DNA from: Dimorphilus gyrociliatus
Lineage: Eukaryota; Animalia; Annelida
NCBI GenBank assembly: GCA_904063045.1
Contig: CAJFCJ010000001.1
Coordinates: 2,914,001-2,978,000 of the forward strand
DNA: 64,000 bases
Direction: 5' to 3'
Shown here: piece after piece, positions 38,439 to 64,000 of the stretch
Position numbering within the stretch: the first letter of the stretch is position 1
How the letters are laid out: every line of letters begins with the position of its first letter
Made by a program: the position numbers and the translations under genes
The notes under the pieces: generated by a model
Told to the model about the DNA's origin: nothing
The model's input: only the letters and a program-made list of their open reading frames with translations
Databases searched by the model: none

Positions 38439-40886
38439 CTAATTAATTCGTATCTTTTCTTCAAAGATTGCCAGTATCAACATTAGTCCAATACCAATTA
38501 AACTTCCGCCATTTGCCACCAAGAATTTTTTTATATTTTCTCTTCCTTTTAAACGATCTAATAATTCGGGCAAAATATCAACAGCAGCGACGTAGATAAA
38601 CATTCCTGCGGTTATCGCAAATATCCAGTTTCTAGTTTCATCTGTACTCGATACTGCAACTCCTATATAGAGTCCTATGAAAGCTGTACATGCTGACAGA
38701 AAATTCAAAAGGGCAGCTCTCTTCACCGACCAACCGGCATCAAACATAATAGCCATATCTCCTATTTCATGGGGTACCTCGTGCAATAGAACGGCTAGAG
38801 ATGTTGAAATTCCAGATTTCCAACCAACAGAAAAAGCGGCTCCAATCGCTAAACCATCTGCAAAATTATGAACTCCGTCGCCAATGGTAGCCATCCATGC
38901 GACGCTTCTATGTATTTTTGGTTTCTCTTCTTCAATGCTCTCTACCTTTTCGAGAGGTTTCTCGTTGAGATTTTCCGGATCAATAACTGGTTGGACGGTG
39001 GAAGAATCTTGAAGTCTTTCACTAAAATAATGTAGTATATACTGAAGAGCAAAGAATGCCCAGAGGCTAGCTAATGTGCTGAGCATTTTCCAGACGAATG
39101 GTTCCACTTTAATTCCGCTGGAAGTTTCACCTTCGTGTTCATGTTGTACAGTAAAGAAATTTTTATACTCAATGTTATTTCTATGCGAAAGTGATAATGG
39201 ATGGGTATGATTATCACTTCCAGAGTGATTGTGACCGTGGTCGTGATCATGATCATGATTATCATGATTATGTAGACCTAGTGAATGAGGTATCAGATGC
39301 AAGAAAGTATCTCCTAACAAAGCACCAGCAGCAAGACCCAGGGCTGCAGCCATCACGAAGTCGTAGGCCTTAGAACCCTTTAATTTAAATATGAATATAC
39401 CAATCAGGCAAGAAATACTGATGATAAAGACGGCAATTGTACCATATCCGTATTCTATTGGAGAAAAATAATAGTAGGTTAGAATGAAAAGCACTTAACT
39501 TGAACACCCTTTGTAAAAGGGTTAAAGAAAAAGAAACTACGAAATATTAGAGAGTAGCTCCATCTTATGGCATAATTTTTATATCTCCTCTGGATTGATT
39601 ATAAATGCCATGTAATACATTCATGATTCAAGTGTCTTATCAACAGTTGAATAAAGCTATATAATAGTTCAAGTAGTTGTTAAATCTTTATTAAAAATTA
39701 TATTTATCTTATCAGGATTCATGTAGGAAAAGTGTACTATTTCGATAAGACAATTAAAATTAGCCTTGAAATAAATTGTGAAATAATATAATTATCTCTA
39801 ATGATAATGAGACTGTTTGAACTAATTTTTATAATTGATAAGAATGTCATTATATGTTAGGAAACTAAAGAAGTAAATATAATTTTTGTTTAGTTTCGTG
39901 TGCAAATTTTAATAATATATATATATAGATGTACTTACGTTTTGCTTTAGTATAACTGTTATTGGTTTCTGGTGGATGACTATGAAGAGGTTCAACTAGA
40001 AAGCAGCTATCTGAAAAATATGAAAAATTAATAAAGGAAATATGATCAATTGCGAACTATATACCTTTTAGATAGTTAATTATAATTGAACTCGTCAATT
40101 CAGCTAATTCGTAGTGTTTTGATACAGTTCTTAAAGGATTTTGTAAAGTTGCTACATCGTAGAAAATAGTTGTGTCAACAATCTATAGAATTGTTAAATG
40201 GTAATAAGAGAGAGAGAGAGAGAGAGAAGGAAAGAAAGGAAGACTTACTTCTTGGCAATTTTTAAAGAAATAGTCGTTGTTCTCTTGAATAATTTGCAGG
40301 TTTATCTTTTTACTTAATTCATTTAATAATTTATTTAAATTATTGAATGAAAAATATTGATTATTTTGTATAAAAGATAAAATATAAGTTGAATATATCG
40401 AATGATGAATATCATTTGGACATTGTCCACTCTTTATGATTGACAAGGCTATTAAATTTGCTTGATTAAATTCTTTTTCGTTCAGATTTGCAGATTGATT
40501 CTTTTCAAGAATTCTATATATATTTTCAGTTGTAAGACACTGTAAGTATAATATATAGAAAATATACTTATGAATTATTTTAATATAATTCAATATATTT
40601 CTAAATTAACCTCTTTACAGCTAGTACACTCTGATTTATCGAGCAATTTTTCAAGCCAAACTTCAAGGGTATCTTTACCTATTTCATTAGTTTTTGGCTG
40701 ATAATCGCTGTCAAAAAGTTCTAATGTCTCGTCTAAACTAGACAAATAAGTTTGATGGGTTTTATTGTACAATATCAATGAAATTAATAAGAACGTTGAA
40801 AGTTTGAAACTGTTGAAAACAAATATTAGAATAGTTGAAAATTTTTTCTTTTTAAGAATAAAAGAAACTTACAAATATGTTGCCAT
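38439..40886 (-). CDS. SLC39A: LIV-1 subfamily ZIP zinc transporter (ZIP4/ZIP12-like) with signal peptide and ectodomain; first coding exon 40886-40873
   Basis: Spliced start MATYFFKLSTFLLISLIL; LAAGALLGDTFLHLIPH, His-rich loop, GDGVHNFADG and HEVPHEIGD (HEXPHEXGD). Confidence 0.9.
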
Positions 40887-57522: not shown

Positions 57523-57596
57523 GGCTCTGTGGCTTAGTTGGTTAAAGCGCCTGTCTAGTAAACAGGAGATCGAGGGTTCGAATCCCTCCAGAGCCT
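57523..57596 (+). tRNA. tRNA-Thr(AGT)
   Basis: Same body as the 55722 copy in the opposite orientation; followed by TTTTT. Confidence 0.97.
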
Positions 57597-57773
57597 TTTT
57601 GTTTGCAAATACACAACACGTAGTTCTTGTTCCTGCAAAAATAACGCATTTAAAGATACATTTAAGAAGATGATAACTTTATTTAAAAAAGCGTATATAA
57701 CCTTCGCTGTGTAATCCTTTTTGATGATAACTCTTTATTTAGAAAATTGAAATATGCAACAAAAAGATTGGAA

Positions 57774-57801
57774 TGGTTCCACTGAGGATCGGAACCAGAA
57801 C
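57774..57801 (-). pseudogene. Truncated 3' fragment of tRNA-Val
   Basis: tggttccactgaggatcggaaccagaac matches the Val 3' end (tggttccactgaggatcgaactcaggac) and then diverges. Confidence 0.7.
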
Positions 57802-57948
57802 TGAATTACATCAGAAGTTTTTTCAAAATTGAATAAACGAATTGCTGCTAGTGATCATTATGAAAGTGTAACTGCTTTTACTATATTAAATTACTAGAAT
57901 TATTATCTTTATAATATATTTATATGATGATTAAAAAAATATATAATT

Positions 57949-58021
57949 TGGTTCCACTGAGGATCGAACTCAGGACCTCTCGCGTGTAAAGCGAGCGTGA
58001 TAACCACTACACTATGAAACC
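57949..58021 (-). tRNA. tRNA-Val(TAC)
   Basis: Anticodon arm CTCGC-TT-TAC-AC-GCGAG; the body differs from Val-AAC at only 2 positions. Confidence 0.93.
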
Positions 58022-58666
58022 ATCTGATATCGGCTTGATAACGTTTTTCTTGTAGTTTATTTCAAAGTCAAGAAATTTATAAATGAAGTTTTCAGAATGA
58101 TTGAAACAGTTTAGAAAATGTATATTAAACATTTAAATTGCATCAATAATAAATATTATTAGCTGAAATTATTTTATAGCCAAATGTAGATTATAGAAAT
58201 GGTAAACTTCAAGAGATATAACCCATTTTTTACATAATTCAAAGTTATAAAACATTGCTAATAAACGTTTTTTTTATAAAAAGTATAATACGTTATATAA
58301 TATAATAAAACTGTTAAAAACTAGTAAAAGAAAACTGTATGGAAATTAAACTAATAGCAAAAAAAATCTATTAAAAGGATAGATTAAGAGAGAGAGGGAA
58401 GAGAATCAGCTCTCTATTGACACTTATTTAACTTTCTTTCTATTGCGTTCATTGTATACTGTATATCTTTCTTATCGCGAAAGAATGGAATATTCTCTAC
58501 AGTATATACAGTATATATATAACAGAAATACTTTAGATCTAAATAAAAAGAAAACAATAAAATATACGTCACGTGTTTTCTATTACTGAAAAAAACTTCA
58601 TATAAAAGAATGTACCAGGTTTTTTTAGTTTAAAATTAGTTGAAATTTTAAAAAAGACTGTTGAAA

Positions 58667-59133
58667 ATGCTTTCTTCCAAAATAATGATTTCTCTTTATG
58701 TTATTCTTTTTGGGTTGTTTGTCAGTCAGGTATATTATTTTTACTCTTTTTCTTCATTAACTAATTGTCTTTCTTCAATATTTTTATATAGCTTTCTGTG
58801 GTCGAGAGTCAATCTGATGGTCCTAACAGTACTGCAGCTGCAGAGATGATAACTACACCGAGCTCGAATACAACTTCACCGAGCTCGAATACAACTACAG
58901 AGGGCAAAACGATTGACGATAAAGAAAACGAAACAGAAAATAACAATAGCGATGAATCTGATACTGAGAAAGACAGTGAGGAAGATGAGGGTGACAACGA
59001 TGACGATGATAAGGACGACGATGATAATGATAACGATGATGGTGACAGCGATGATAATGACTCCGATGAAGACGACGATGACGATTGCGACAAGGACAAA
59101 GATGAATCAGAGGATACAGACGAAGAAAAATAA
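58667..59133 (+). CDS. Secreted, extremely acidic Asp/Glu-rich protein (~134 aa); exons 58667-58729 and 58792-59133
   Basis: A phase-0 GT-AG intron joins the signal peptide MLSSKIMISLYVILFGLFVSQ|LSVVES to a Thr/Ser segment and a D/E tail (46 of the last 72 residues acidic, counted by hand). Confidence 0.85.
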
Positions 59134-59637
59134 TACATTTTAAACTGTGACTTATTGTAACAACATTGAATAATACAATTCAAGAATAAATGCAATTATA
59201 ATAAATAGTTAATTTCATTTTTTCATAATTTCTATATTAAAATATACAGCCTTAACAGCGTTTACTATAAACCAAACAGTTGTTTGTCGTTTTTCAATAA
59301 CAGTTAATTGTTCAAGTTGTTTTCATTTAACAAAGTTATATTTATTGAGTAATACTGATAAAAACTCCATATTTATAATTACACTATTTTCAATTGAACT
59401 ATATAGTATTAATGAAAAATTTAACACTTTGTTATATTTGCCATTTTCGTTTATTGTCAATTCACAGAAAAACTTCAGTTAGGCTGAAAGATAACTCATT
59501 GACAAGATATACTTTTCAATAAAATTCTTTAATTTATATAATGTGCAATTAAGTATCATTGTTTTTAAATTGAATCTAATATATTCTTCATTATTCTATT
59601 ATCGTTTTCATTTCGTTTTCAAGTCATTTGTAAAGCC

Positions 59638-62169
59638 CTAGCTTCTTAGTTTTTTCAAATAAATTGCTCGAAGTTTTGCCAAGTGTTTTTGCTGAACTAG
59701 TCGTTCATGTGCTAGTCTTTTTTGATGAGCTAATAGTTGTACTCTGAGTTTATGTTGAAAGGCTCGTTGTTGGACTATTAACCTATGACGAACAGCTGCT
59801 TGTTGTTGGGCCAATTTTCTCTGATGGACCAGACGTTGGTGGATCAGTCTTTTTTGTTGGACCAATTGTTGGTGGATCAGTCTTTTATGTTGGACCAGAC
59901 GTTGGTGGGTCAGTAGTTTTTGGTGAACTAGACGTTGGTGGGTCAGTTGTCTTTGGTGAATCACACGCTGGTTGGCTAGTCTCCTCAGCTGAACCAGCTG
60001 CTGTGTTTTGAATTTTTGTTGAATTTGTCTTTGATGCGCCAATAATCTTTGTTGAAGTATTCGTAGTTGTGTTATTCGTCTCTGATGAACCAGCTGCTGT
60101 GCTCTGAGCCTTTGTTGAAAAGCTCGTTGTTGGGCCACCAACCTTTGATGAACTATTGCTTGTGCTCTTTTCTGTGCAATTTGTTGCATTCTGAGTTTAT
60201 GTTGAAAGGCTCGTTGTTGGGCCAACAACCTTTGACGAACTACTGCTTGTTGCTGTGCCAGTCTTCTTTGTTGTACCACACGCTGTTGGGTAAGTCTTGA
60301 GTTTTGCAATTGTTGCTGTTGTGCTAATCTTCTTTGATGAGTTAACAGCTGTATTCTAAGTCTATGTTGAAAAGCACGTTGTTGGGCCAACAACTTCTGA
60401 CGAACTGCTGCTTGTTGTTGTGCCAATCTTCTTTGTTGAATCACACGCTGGTTGACTAGTCTCTTCTGCTGAATCAGTTGTTGTGCCTTGAATTGCTGTT
60501 GAATTCGTCTTTGATGGGCCAATAGTCTTTGTTGAATTAGTCGCAGTTGTGCTATTTTTCTTTGATGAGCCAATTCCTGTGCATTGAATCTTTGTTGGAA
60601 TGCTCGTTGTTGGGCCAACAACCTTTGACGAACTGTTGCTTGTTGTTGTGCCAGTTTTCTTTGCTGATTGAAACGCTGTTGATAAAGTCTTGTGTTTTGG
60701 ATTTGTTGTTGTTGAGCTAGTTTCCTTTGCTGAGTTATCTGCTGTATTCTGAGTCTTTGTTGGAATGCTTGTTGTTGGGCCAACATCCTTTGACGAACTG
60801 CTGTTAGTTGTTGTGCCAGTTTTCTTTGTTGAGTCACACGCTGTTGGTTAAGTCTTCTCTGCTGGGCCAGTTGCTTTGTTCTAAAGTTCTGTTGAATTTG
60901 TCGTTGTTGAATCAGTAATCTTTGATAAATTTGTCGCTGTTGTTCTAATCTTTTCTGATGAGCCAATAACTGTGCTCTGAATCTCTGCTGGTATGCTCGT
61001 TGTTGGGCCAATATTCTTTGATGAGTTGCTGCTTGTCGCTGAGCAAGTGTCCTTTGCTGAACCAATCGTTGCTGTGTAAGTATTCTTTGCTGAACCATAC
61101 GTTGTTGTACTAACTTTCTTTGTTGTTCAGTCAATATTCTTTGCTGATTTAATCGTTGTTGTGCAAACCTATTTTGCAGAATTACTTGTTGCCCTTGAAG
61201 TTTTCGTTGGATAGCCTGTAGCTGAGCAACTCTCCTTTGATGAATTAATAATTGTTGTGCTAGTTTTCTTTTCTGAAGTTTCCGTTGTTGGGCAAATCTA
61301 TTTTGCTGAATTAGTCGTTGATGAGCCAATTTTCTTGATTGAACCGTTTCCTGCACTCTGAGTTTATGTTGAAACGCTCGTTGTTGGGCCAATATTCTTT
61401 CATGAACTACTGCCTGTTGCTTCGCAAGTCTCAATTGTTGTTGTAGTCGTTGCTGTGCAAGTCTTGCTTGCTGAGTTAGTCTCTGTTGTGCCAATATTTT
61501 TTGTTGTTGAGCCAGTTTTTTTTGCTGAAGCAATCTTTGCTGGGCCAGTCTGGTTTGTAAAACTACTTGTTGTTTTTGGAGTCTTTGTTGAATTGTTTGT
61601 AACTGAGTAATTCTCCTTTGATGAATTAATTGTTGTTGCGCTAGTCTTCTTCGCTGAATTTCTTGTTGTTGAACAAGTTTGTTTTGTTGAACTTCTAGTT
61701 GCTGATCCAATCTTCTTCGTTGAACCACTAGCTGTGTTCTGAGCCTTTCCTGGAATGCTCGTTGTTGAGCCAATATTCTTTGGTGAACTGCTGCTTGTTG
61801 TTGGGAAAGCCTGCTTTGCTGAAGCAAACGCTGTTGGAGAAGTGTTTTTTGCTGAGCCAATTGCTGAGCTCTGAGTTTCTGTTGAATTCTTTTTTGTTGG
61901 GCTAGTGTCCTCTGTTGAATCGATAATTGGCTCTTAACTCTTGCTTGGAGAGTTCGAAGCATGGCAAGCTTTTTTTGTTCAATTGCTTTTTTCTCTGTAA
62001 CAGAAACAAGGAAAGAAGCTATAATACGAGAGAAAAAAAAGAGTACAAAAGATGAAATTAAACCTGCAATTTGAGAAAGATCCGATGAATCGGGTTGTTT
62101 TAATGATCCATTAGATAAAACAATTTGAAATAGAGACAAAAAAATGAGGCAGCTAATAGAAAGCCTCAT
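59638..62169 (-). CDS. Secreted Gln/Arg/Leu-rich basic repeat protein (843 aa unspliced; likely 45-nt in-frame intron 62019-62063)
   Basis: Signal peptide MRLSISCLIFLSLFQIVLS; ~2.4 kb open frame; 9 copies of an LAQQRAFQ-type motif; 33-bp DNA periodicity. Confidence 0.9.
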   Translation of the reverse strand: MRLSISCLIFLSLFQIVLSNGSLKQPDSSDLSQIAGLISSFVLFFFSRIIASFLVSVTEKKAIEQKKLAMLRTLQARVKSQLSIQQRTLAQQKRIQQKLRAQQLAQQKTLLQQRLLQQSRLSQQQAAVHQRILAQQRAFQERLRTQLVVQRRRLDQQLEVQQNKLVQQQEIQRRRLAQQQLIHQRRITQLQTIQQRLQKQQVVLQTRLAQQRLLQQKKLAQQQKILAQQRLTQQARLAQQRLQQQLRLAKQQAVVHERILAQQRAFQHKLRVQETVQSRKLAHQRLIQQNRFAQQRKLQKRKLAQQLLIHQRRVAQLQAIQRKLQGQQVILQNRFAQQRLNQQRILTEQQRKLVQQRMVQQRILTQQRLVQQRTLAQRQAATHQRILAQQRAYQQRFRAQLLAHQKRLEQQRQIYQRLLIQQRQIQQNFRTKQLAQQRRLNQQRVTQQRKLAQQLTAVRQRMLAQQQAFQQRLRIQQITQQRKLAQQQQIQNTRLYQQRFNQQRKLAQQQATVRQRLLAQQRAFQQRFNAQELAHQRKIAQLRLIQQRLLAHQRRIQQQFKAQQLIQQKRLVNQRVIQQRRLAQQQAAVRQKLLAQQRAFQHRLRIQLLTHQRRLAQQQQLQNSRLTQQRVVQQRRLAQQQAVVRQRLLAQQRAFQHKLRMQQIAQKRAQAIVHQRLVAQQRAFQQRLRAQQLVHQRRITQLRILQQRLLAHQRQIQQKFKTQQLVQLRRLANQRVIHQRQLTHQRLVHQKLLTHQRLVQHKRLIHQQLVQQKRLIHQRLVHQRKLAQQQAAVRHRLIVQQRAFQHKLRVQLLAHQKRLAHERLVQQKHLAKLRAIYLKKLRS

Positions 62170-62682: not shown

Positions 62683-62755
62683 CGCCCAATGTGGGGCTCG
62701 AACCCACGACCCTGAGATTAAGAGTCTCATGCTCTACCGACTGAGCTAACCGGGC
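62683..62755 (-). tRNA. tRNA-Lys(CTT)
   Basis: Same tRNA body as the other Lys copies. Confidence 0.98.
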
Positions 62756-62957
62756 TTACATAAGATAAAAAAACCCTCCTATTATTTCATACACATTCAT
62801 TCATCTCTTCTTGCTACTTGCTTTCACTTTGAAGTAATTGTAAAAAATTCTTTATTTAGACATTAGACATTCTTTTATCTGATCAGGGAATCAATATTTC
62901 AATACTTTCTTCATTAATCCTGGATTGATTAAGTTATTGTTGGTTAATCCTTATATA

Positions 62958-63030
62958 GGTTCCATAGTGTAGTGGTTATCACGCTCGCTTAACACGCGAG
63001 AGGTCCTGAGTTCGATCCTCAGTGGAACCA
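62958..63030 (+). tRNA. tRNA-Val(AAC)
   Basis: Same body as the 56131 copy; T-run terminator. Confidence 0.97.
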
Positions 63031-63639: not shown

Positions 63640-64000
63640 TTATTTTATACTTCTTTCGGCAATTTTAATCCTTTTACTTTTCAATAATCTTTTAATTGTT
63701 TTTAAAAAGTCAGAACAAAAGTGTGAACAGTAGATTATTGGATTTAAAGAGCAGTTTAAGGGTACTACAAAACCAATTATATATGCGTAACTAGCCGACG
63801 TTAAAGGTGATATTGACAAAGCCGCAAGAGTACCTTTACACATGGAGGAAAGATGATAATCTCTATTTATAAGTTTGTTGGAAAATTCTGTAACTAACTA
63901 AGAAAGAAAATTGGTAATGAAGCTAAAATGTTTGTCCAGACAACTGGTAGAACTTTCTTTAATAGTTGCATATTTTCTTTGTGAACAGTCTCTTTTGATT
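63640..64000 (-). CDS. 3' end (TM6-TM7, tail) of a class A GPCR, LGR/RXFP/GRL101-like; runs off the window edge
   Basis: KENMQLLKKVLPVVWTNILASLPIFFL|STLAAL..YAYIIGFVVPLNCSLNPIIY, with a phase-1 intron between TM6 and TM7. Confidence 0.8.

Follow-up and report, generated by a model that had tools for sequence, protein, structure and literature searches.

The closest described systems to the locus reported here are the cement of the sandcastle worm and the adhesive of the flatworm Macrostomum lignano. The sandcastle-worm proteins Pc-1 to Pc-5 are secreted, repetitive, of low diversity, and oppositely charged. They are packed into gland granules and are thought to coacervate (PMC4275877). The cohesive flatworm protein Mlig-ap1 is a secreted, extremely positive repeat protein that has no homologues elsewhere and is blocked by polyanions (PMC6410801). 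We analyzed a window of 64,000 nt from the annelid Dimorphilus gyrociliatus (assembly GCA_904063045.1, contig CAJFCJ010000001.1, positions 2,914,001 to 2,978,000 of the forward strand). Two adjacent genes, here called gene A and gene B, lie tail-to-tail between positions 58,667 and 62,169 of this window. Gene A encodes a small Asp/Glu-rich product, and gene B encodes a long Gln/Arg/Leu-rich repeat protein. They are best explained as separate, lineage-restricted, and so far unannotated genes for secreted low-complexity polyelectrolytes.

Comparison with described systems

The pair resembles sabellariid cement in its general features. Both products have signal-like N-termini and are repetitive, and their net charges are opposite (approximately -44 for A and +155 for B). 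The chemistry differs. The sabellariid polyanion is the phosphoserine-rich Pc-3, whereas A is 30% Asp, 14% Glu, and 13% Ser with three Ser-x-Glu sites and is not of the Pc-3 type. The sabellariid polycations contain Tyr that is converted to 3,4-dihydroxyphenylalanine (DOPA). B contains 0.5% Tyr and 0.1% Gly, is rich in Gln, Arg, and Leu, and is predicted to be helical. Neither product resembles the sabellariid cement proteins, and an HMMER search with B found no similarity to them in sequence. An initial annotation of this DNA had drawn an analogy with sandcastle-worm cement. That analogy fails on the defining chemistry, since the pair includes no polyphosphoserine protein and no Gly/Lys/Tyr (DOPA) protein.

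B is extremely positive, as is Mlig-ap1. The flatworm protein is larger, with Lys/Arg-rich regions that together exceed 3,600 aa, whereas the bulk of B comes from Gln and Leu. Mlig-ap1 carries C-type lectin, von Willebrand D, and C8 domains, among others; B has no Pfam domain and no Cys in its repeat body. B also shares an 11-residue rhythm and a helix-forming composition with the Glu-Arg-Lys repeats of charged single alpha-helices. Those segments are approximately 20 to 35% Asp/Glu and near neutral, and B has Gln in place of their Glu. A single alpha-helix of the Glu-Arg-Lys kind depends on i to i+4 salt bridges between acidic and basic residues in alternation, and the 11 acidic residues among 784 in B do not supply them.

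Aspein- and Asprich-type proteins of mollusc shells and the acidic granins are like A in having a signal peptide followed by a long, low-complexity, Asp/Glu-rich sequence that binds divalent cations. A word-indexed search and the ESM Atlas revealed no sequence similarity for A. We know of no mineralized structure in this worm. A and B belong to neither the cement family nor the Mlig-ap1 family. At most, they apply the same physical principle in a new form.

Gene B: coding status and structure

The initial annotation described convergent signal-peptide genes with stop codons about 500 bp apart. Both genes were found where it had placed them, their stop codons are 504 nt apart, and all of its figures proved right. 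Gene B begins with an ATG at 62169 in an AAAATG context, preceded 6 nt upstream by an in-frame TAG, and it ends with a TAG at 59638-59640. Its 843 codons contain zero internal stops, compared with 18 to 84 in the other five frames. There are 479 single-base changes that could create a stop in this frame. Under neutral drift 7 to 29 stops would be expected, and none was observed. In a neutral simulation the frame stayed open in 0.2% of trials at 5% divergence (P = 0.002); the internal repeats of B diverge by 24 to 29%.

The ratio of nonsynonymous to synonymous substitution rates (dN/dS) was calculated between the large repeats (127 to 131 residues). It was 0.32 (95% confidence interval, 0.18 to 0.55) and 0.38 (0.23 to 0.60) in frame and 0.7 to 1.27 in shifted frames. 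The synonymous divergence (dS) between the repeats was 0.6 to 0.8; the duplications are therefore old, and the protein has been conserved since. Gene B is clearly a maintained coding gene under purifying selection. We consider it highly likely to be a real gene.

A 69-nt segment begins 16 residues past the signal peptide of B. It starts with GT and ends with a pyrimidine run and AG, and it is T-rich, whereas the exons are A-rich on the coding strand. We regard it as very probably an intron, in frame by chance. The median intron of D. gyrociliatus is 66 bp (PMC7854359), and the introns proposed for A and B (62 and 69 nt) match this size. At their splice sites they are similar to the real introns of DgyrCDS780, the neighboring annotated gene. 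If the segment were retained, B would cross the membrane once, with a tiny part outside the cell and a huge basic tail in the cytoplasm. The segment does preserve the reading frame and would encode 23 mostly hydrophobic residues, followed by Lys-rich sequence. However, its GT start, pyrimidine run, and AG end, its 58% T (as in the intron of A), its length typical of the species' introns, and its contrast with the A-rich exons leave retention with only the faintest probability.

Gene B: composition, repeats, and predicted shape

The product of B had been described as about 800 aa of Gln, Arg, Lys, His, and Leu with almost no acidic residues. This description holds: the five residues make up 67% of the protein, and the 843-codon frame encodes only 14 Asp/Glu. 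The repeat body of 784 aa contains 30.5% Gln, 15.6% Arg, 14.9% Leu, 9.4% Ala, 5.6% Lys, and 3.7% His. It contains 11 acidic residues (1.4%), one Gly, no Pro, and no Cys. B has a mass of approximately 96 kDa and a net charge of +0.20 per residue. Its computed isoelectric point is at the calculator's upper limit of 12.

The DNA of gene B repeats with a period of 33 nt and in higher-order units of 381 to 393 nt. The protein unit is basic-Leu-hydrophobic-Gln-Gln, with alternating 5- and 6-residue versions, and a positive charge occurs about every five residues. A motif of approximately 25 residues, here called the anchor motif (consensus xLAQQQAAVRQRLLAQQRAFQxRLR), is present in 9 copies. The copies are spaced by 127, 127, 76, 55, 76, 55, 29, and 120 residues.

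B has a strong 5.5-residue period, with a normalized Fourier power of 68 for hydrophobicity, 37 for charge, and 77 for Gln. At 3.5, 3.6, and 3.67 residues the power for these three properties was 0.0 to 0.6; for hydrophobicity it was 0.3 at 3.5 and 0.4 at 3.67 residues. The AlphaFold model of B is helical nearly throughout, with a few short breaks. The body is probably almost all-helical, and the lack of Pro and near absence of Gly agree with this prediction. With a 5.5-residue period, successive Leu residues would lie on opposite faces of such a helix. This arrangement would leave the helix without amphipathic character and would make a canonical coiled coil unexpected. Both a canonical coiled coil (heptad or hendecad) and an amphipathic antimicrobial helix were rejected for B because it has no 3.5- to 3.67-residue periodicity. 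Since a charge occurs about every five residues and acids are almost absent, self-association of B should need neutralization by a polyanion.

B could also be a polyprotein precursor from which cleavage at the numerous dibasic sites would release cationic peptides. Cuts at the Lys/Arg runs would give recurring pieces of 9, 20, and 30 to 31 residues, among them a 31-residue piece that begins with the anchor motif and is present in five or six closely similar copies. However, once the dibasic pair is added, the piece lengths become 11, 22, and 33 and simply reproduce the repeat period. Gly amidation signals and acidic spacers are absent, and the body contains a single Gly. Unlike membrane-active helical peptides, the pieces show no amphipathicity at 3.6 residues. 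The chance that B is such a precursor appears slim.

Gene A: structure and coding status

Gene A is likely to be a real gene. Its ATG at 58667 is in an AAAATG context, and its stop is a TAA at 59131-59133. Read without splicing, the frame stops after 62 codons. The exons were joined solely for translation and composition counts, and the database searches used exon 2 alone. Exon 2 encodes a short complex stretch, then a Ser/Thr/Asn-rich part encoded by 2.3 copies of a 21-nt repeat, and then the Asp/Glu tail. The exon 2 product has a charge of approximately -44 at pH 7.5 to 8.1. Gene A encodes six N-x-S/T sequons in addition to its Ser-x-Glu sites. The tail had been put at about 64% Asp/Glu with phosphorylatable Ser-x-Glu sites. 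We found 60 to 66% Asp plus Glu, depending on where the tail is taken to start, and three such sites, in agreement with that description.

The open frame of A is poor evidence for coding. Its Asp-rich DNA is open in other frames too, on both strands. Because the length of the frame is uninformative, the case for coding rests on the signal exon, the in-phase intron, the AAAATG context, and the AATAAA signals. The alternative is that gene A is not real and that only B is functional. The locus would then hold a simple repeat resembling Asp codons, behind a chance hydrophobic frame and a chance GT..AG. The openness of the repeat DNA in several frames on both strands agrees with this alternative, as does the absence of A from the annotation. 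A also has no relatives or paralogues that would permit a selection test. Against it, the signal-like exon is in the top 3% of the window's ATG-started open frames. The 62-nt intron is in phase, the start context is AAAATG, and two AATAAA signals follow soon past the stop. The single-step neighbors of Asp codons found in the tail are Asn, Gly, and Glu only, with no Tyr, His, Ala, or Val. This restriction to hydrophilic neighbors gives a weak sign of constraint. We consider it unlikely, though by no means negligibly so, that gene A is spurious.

Searches for relatives

The initial annotation recognized neither protein, and none of our searches of Pfam, the Protein Data Bank (PDB), the ESM Atlas, the word index, and HMMER yielded a relative. 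B was searched as the unspliced frame. Pfam searches with both proteins up to E = 10 returned nothing except a meaningless match to DUF6325 (E = 0.28). A word-indexed search of 5.8 billion proteins returned no match for A or B, not even the proteins themselves; the neighboring DgyrCDS780 is present in that collection. Exact-sequence look-ups did not find A or B in the collection, although the window's own genome may lie outside the reach of the look-up. The PDB contained no match to B, either by sequence or by a profile of the anchor motif, and the ESM Atlas contained no usable match to either protein. The assembly of 77.9 Mb in 349 contigs was searched with B, A, and the anchor-motif profile. 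Only the locus itself was found, with no paralogues.

An exhaustive HMMER search with B returned 22 weak matches, of which the best had E = 3.9e-10. The inspected matches were generic repeats with an 11-residue rhythm, such as the KRLAEQKAAEE type. The matched parts were mostly 9 to 35% acidic and near neutral or negative; four of the weaker matches (P0004, P0006, P0018, and P0019) were mildly positive. The matches were rejected as homologues of B because none unites its Gln content with its positive charge. The similarity is read as a common rhythm and not as common ancestry.

Secretion and proposed role

The N-termini of A and B reach a signal-peptide-like hydrophobicity that only 2 to 3% of the window's ATG-started open frames attain. 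From these N-termini we infer that both products may be secreted. The best reading of the sequence is that A and B would be gland products, secreted as polyelectrolytes; we put this at about an even chance. B would be an extended polycationic rod secreted from a gland. Within secretory granules or once released, it would use its charge to bind and condense polyanions, for which acidic or sulphated glycans of mucus, acidic proteins, and surfaces are candidates. The many Gln residues of B and some of its Lys residues could be cross-linked by transglutaminase. A would be a small, probably glycosylated Asp/Glu-rich peptide that binds divalent cations or polycations. The genome contains FAM20-type kinase loci and transglutaminase-core loci. 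These loci show only that enzymes for Ser-x-Glu phosphorylation and cross-linking exist. The worm's secreted materials include egg cocoons, various gland-cell secretions, and the products of male adhesive glands. D. gyrociliatus lays its eggs in cocoons (PMC5101659), and adhesive glands are present near the male gonopore in dinophilids (bioRxiv 10.1101/491886).

Several points weigh against the proposal that A and B are secreted polyelectrolytes. Complexes that are purely electrostatic are weakened at the ionic strength of seawater. The open frame of A is by itself uninformative, since Asp-codon repeat DNA is open in several frames. The AlphaFold confidence for B is low (mean predicted local distance difference test score of 60, from a single sequence). 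The predicted helix of B would not be amphipathic (power of 0.1 to 0.4 at 3.5 to 3.67 residues versus 68 at 5.5). The promoter of B is not defined, because its TATA-like box is only approximately 25 nt before the ATG and is too near it for a normal leader. Finally, neither A nor B is in the public D. gyrociliatus gene set.

The last point probably has a technical cause. A and B consist almost wholly of tandem or low-complexity repeats. The published annotation pipeline dropped predictions with at least 90% overlap with masked regions. Because repeat-masked models were removed, the absence of A and B is most probably a filtering artefact and is not evidence against expression. The same filter may have removed other secreted repeat proteins.

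Partnership between A and B

The material role of the two products and any partnership between them are putative. The proposal of a two-component material stood in part. Both products look secreted, their charges are extreme and opposite, and the worm makes secreted materials. Joint action found no support beyond adjacency.

One form of this proposal is that A and B are cosecreted and form a glue, cocoon, or mucus material by complex coacervation. Both have signal peptides, and their charges are such that approximately 3 to 4 A per B would neutralize. They are immediate neighbors in the 4.7-kb island between tRNA genes. The worm is a cocoon layer (PMC5101659), and sandcastle-worm cement shows the principle in annelids (PMC4275877). 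However, nothing except adjacency connects the two, and the pair has no polyphosphoserine. B is almost without Gly or Tyr and is predicted to be helical, not disordered. The k-mers common to the upstream regions of A and B are at chance level, and no promoter motifs are shared beyond chance.

Acidic tracts are also frequent in this genome. Runs of at least 7 acidic codons gave 3,386 pattern matches, and a reversed-pattern control gave approximately half as many. The first 3 Mb of the contig contains approximately 23 separate plus-strand loci with acidic runs. By rough estimate, a few per cent of genes carry an acidic tract. An acidic neighbor of B is therefore not rare; a small, secreted, mostly acidic protein is certainly rarer than a neighbor with an acidic tract. 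A coacervating pair is, on this evidence, improbable.

The pair could instead serve temporary adhesion of the duo-gland type. The cohesion or adhesion would then come from the cationic B, and A would be a small anionic releaser that competes B off. In M. lignano the Lys/Arg-rich regions of the cohesive Mlig-ap1 are extremely positive, attachment is blocked by negatively charged molecules, and a small anionic releasing factor has been proposed (PMC6410801). The dinophilid adhesive glands near the male gonopore agree with an adhesive use (bioRxiv 10.1101/491886). However, B has no lectin, von Willebrand, or other Mlig-ap1 domains, and no protein is known to act as the releaser in the flatworm. 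A glue-and-releaser pair is very improbable.

Taken more broadly, A and B might form a genuine two-component secreted system of any of these kinds (glue, cocoon jelly, or glue plus releaser), in which B folds or bundles only when neutralized by A. This is improbable. Under this reading B would represent a novel type of material protein, a Pro- and Cys-free Gln/Arg/Leu rod with a 5.5-residue rhythm. Its length would be approximately 118 nm if it were fully helical (an estimate from 784 residues at a rise of 1.5 Å).

If B is a secreted structural polycation, it adds a helix-forming Gln/Arg design to the underwater polyelectrolyte materials. Those known are mostly disordered Gly/Lys/Tyr or phosphoserine proteins. 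If so, a very small and genetically tractable annelid would become a model for the packaging and release of such materials. The locus also reveals an annotation gap. The published set for a reference genome lacks two probable genes, and purifying selection is clear for one of these. This annotation and others like it probably undercount secreted low-complexity proteins.

Features of the locus and neighboring genes

The window is AT-rich animal DNA with approximately 30% G+C. The coordinates of the features at the locus are given in Table 1. Ten transfer RNA (tRNA) genes on both strands (four Lys-CTT, three Val-AAC, one Val-TAC, and two Thr-AGT) bracket A and B, which are alone in the island between them.

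Table 1. Positions of genes A and B and of the surrounding features in the window
Feature	Position	Strand	Description
Eight tRNA genes (two Thr-AGT, three Lys-CTT, two Val-AAC, one Val-TAC)	55722..58022		Called by ARAGORN
Gene A, whole	58667-59133	+	Two exons, 62-nt intron, product of ~134 aa
Gene A, exon 1	58667..58729	+	21 codons; start codon and signal-peptide-like N-terminus
Gene A, intron	58730..58791	+	62 nt, GT..AG, 58% T, phase 0
Gene A, exon 2	58792..59133	+	113 aa; Ser/Thr/Asn-rich part, then Asp/Glu tail
Spacer between the A and B stops	59134..59637		504 nt; minus-strand AATAAA/ATTAAA-like hexamers serving gene B
Two AATAAA polyadenylation-signal-like hexamers	59185..59205	+	51 and 66 nt past the gene A stop
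Gene B, whole frame	62169-59638	-	843-codon open frame
Gene B, exon 1	62064..62169	-	Start codon and signal peptide: MR, hydrophobic core, small residues at -3/-1
Gene B, probable intron	61995..62063	-	69 nt, GT..AG, 58% T, phase 1, in frame
Gene B, exon 2	59638..61994	-	784-aa Gln/Arg/Leu repeat body
tRNA-Lys-CTT and tRNA-Val-AAC	62683..63030		Called by ARAGORN; between gene B and the receptor gene

The last coding exon of a G-protein-coupled receptor is on the minus strand at 63640-63843, and the gene runs on past the end of the window. The exon contains an NPxxY-type motif in frame. B was considered as part of this receptor gene, which ends near 63640. This was rejected because two tRNA genes intervene.

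Two short frames upstream of the locus may encode neuropeptides. The frame at 49579-49842 on the plus strand encodes 87 aa that include a signal peptide. Cleavage at its Lys/Arg pairs would yield peptides, the last of them with the end Pro-Arg-Tyr-Gly-Lys-Lys. It has no Pfam match. The sequence suggests a C-terminally amidated neuropeptide of the RYamide type. The frame at 54804-55067 on the plus strand also encodes 87 aa with a signal peptide. It contains a Lys-Arg site, a Cys-Gly-Ala-Phe-Gly-Cys loop, and, later, a Tyr-Gly and a Lys-rich site. Pfam gave no match to it, and the protein collection contains no identical entry. It is a possible precursor of a disulphide-looped amidated neuropeptide, reminiscent of the crustacean cardioactive peptide (CCAP)-like peptides.

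The ZIP transporter frame at 38439-39494 shares 99% identity with the D. gyrociliatus model DgyrCDS780. The sole other tRNA call in the window, a doubtful tRNA-Trp at 39191-39266, lies inside this coding frame. The DgyrCDS780 model was also compared with the minus strand at 39937-40808. The identity was 98.5% over two of three exons and 77% over residues 72 to 135 (40182-39937), which points to another choice of exon, or an error in the model, for these residues.

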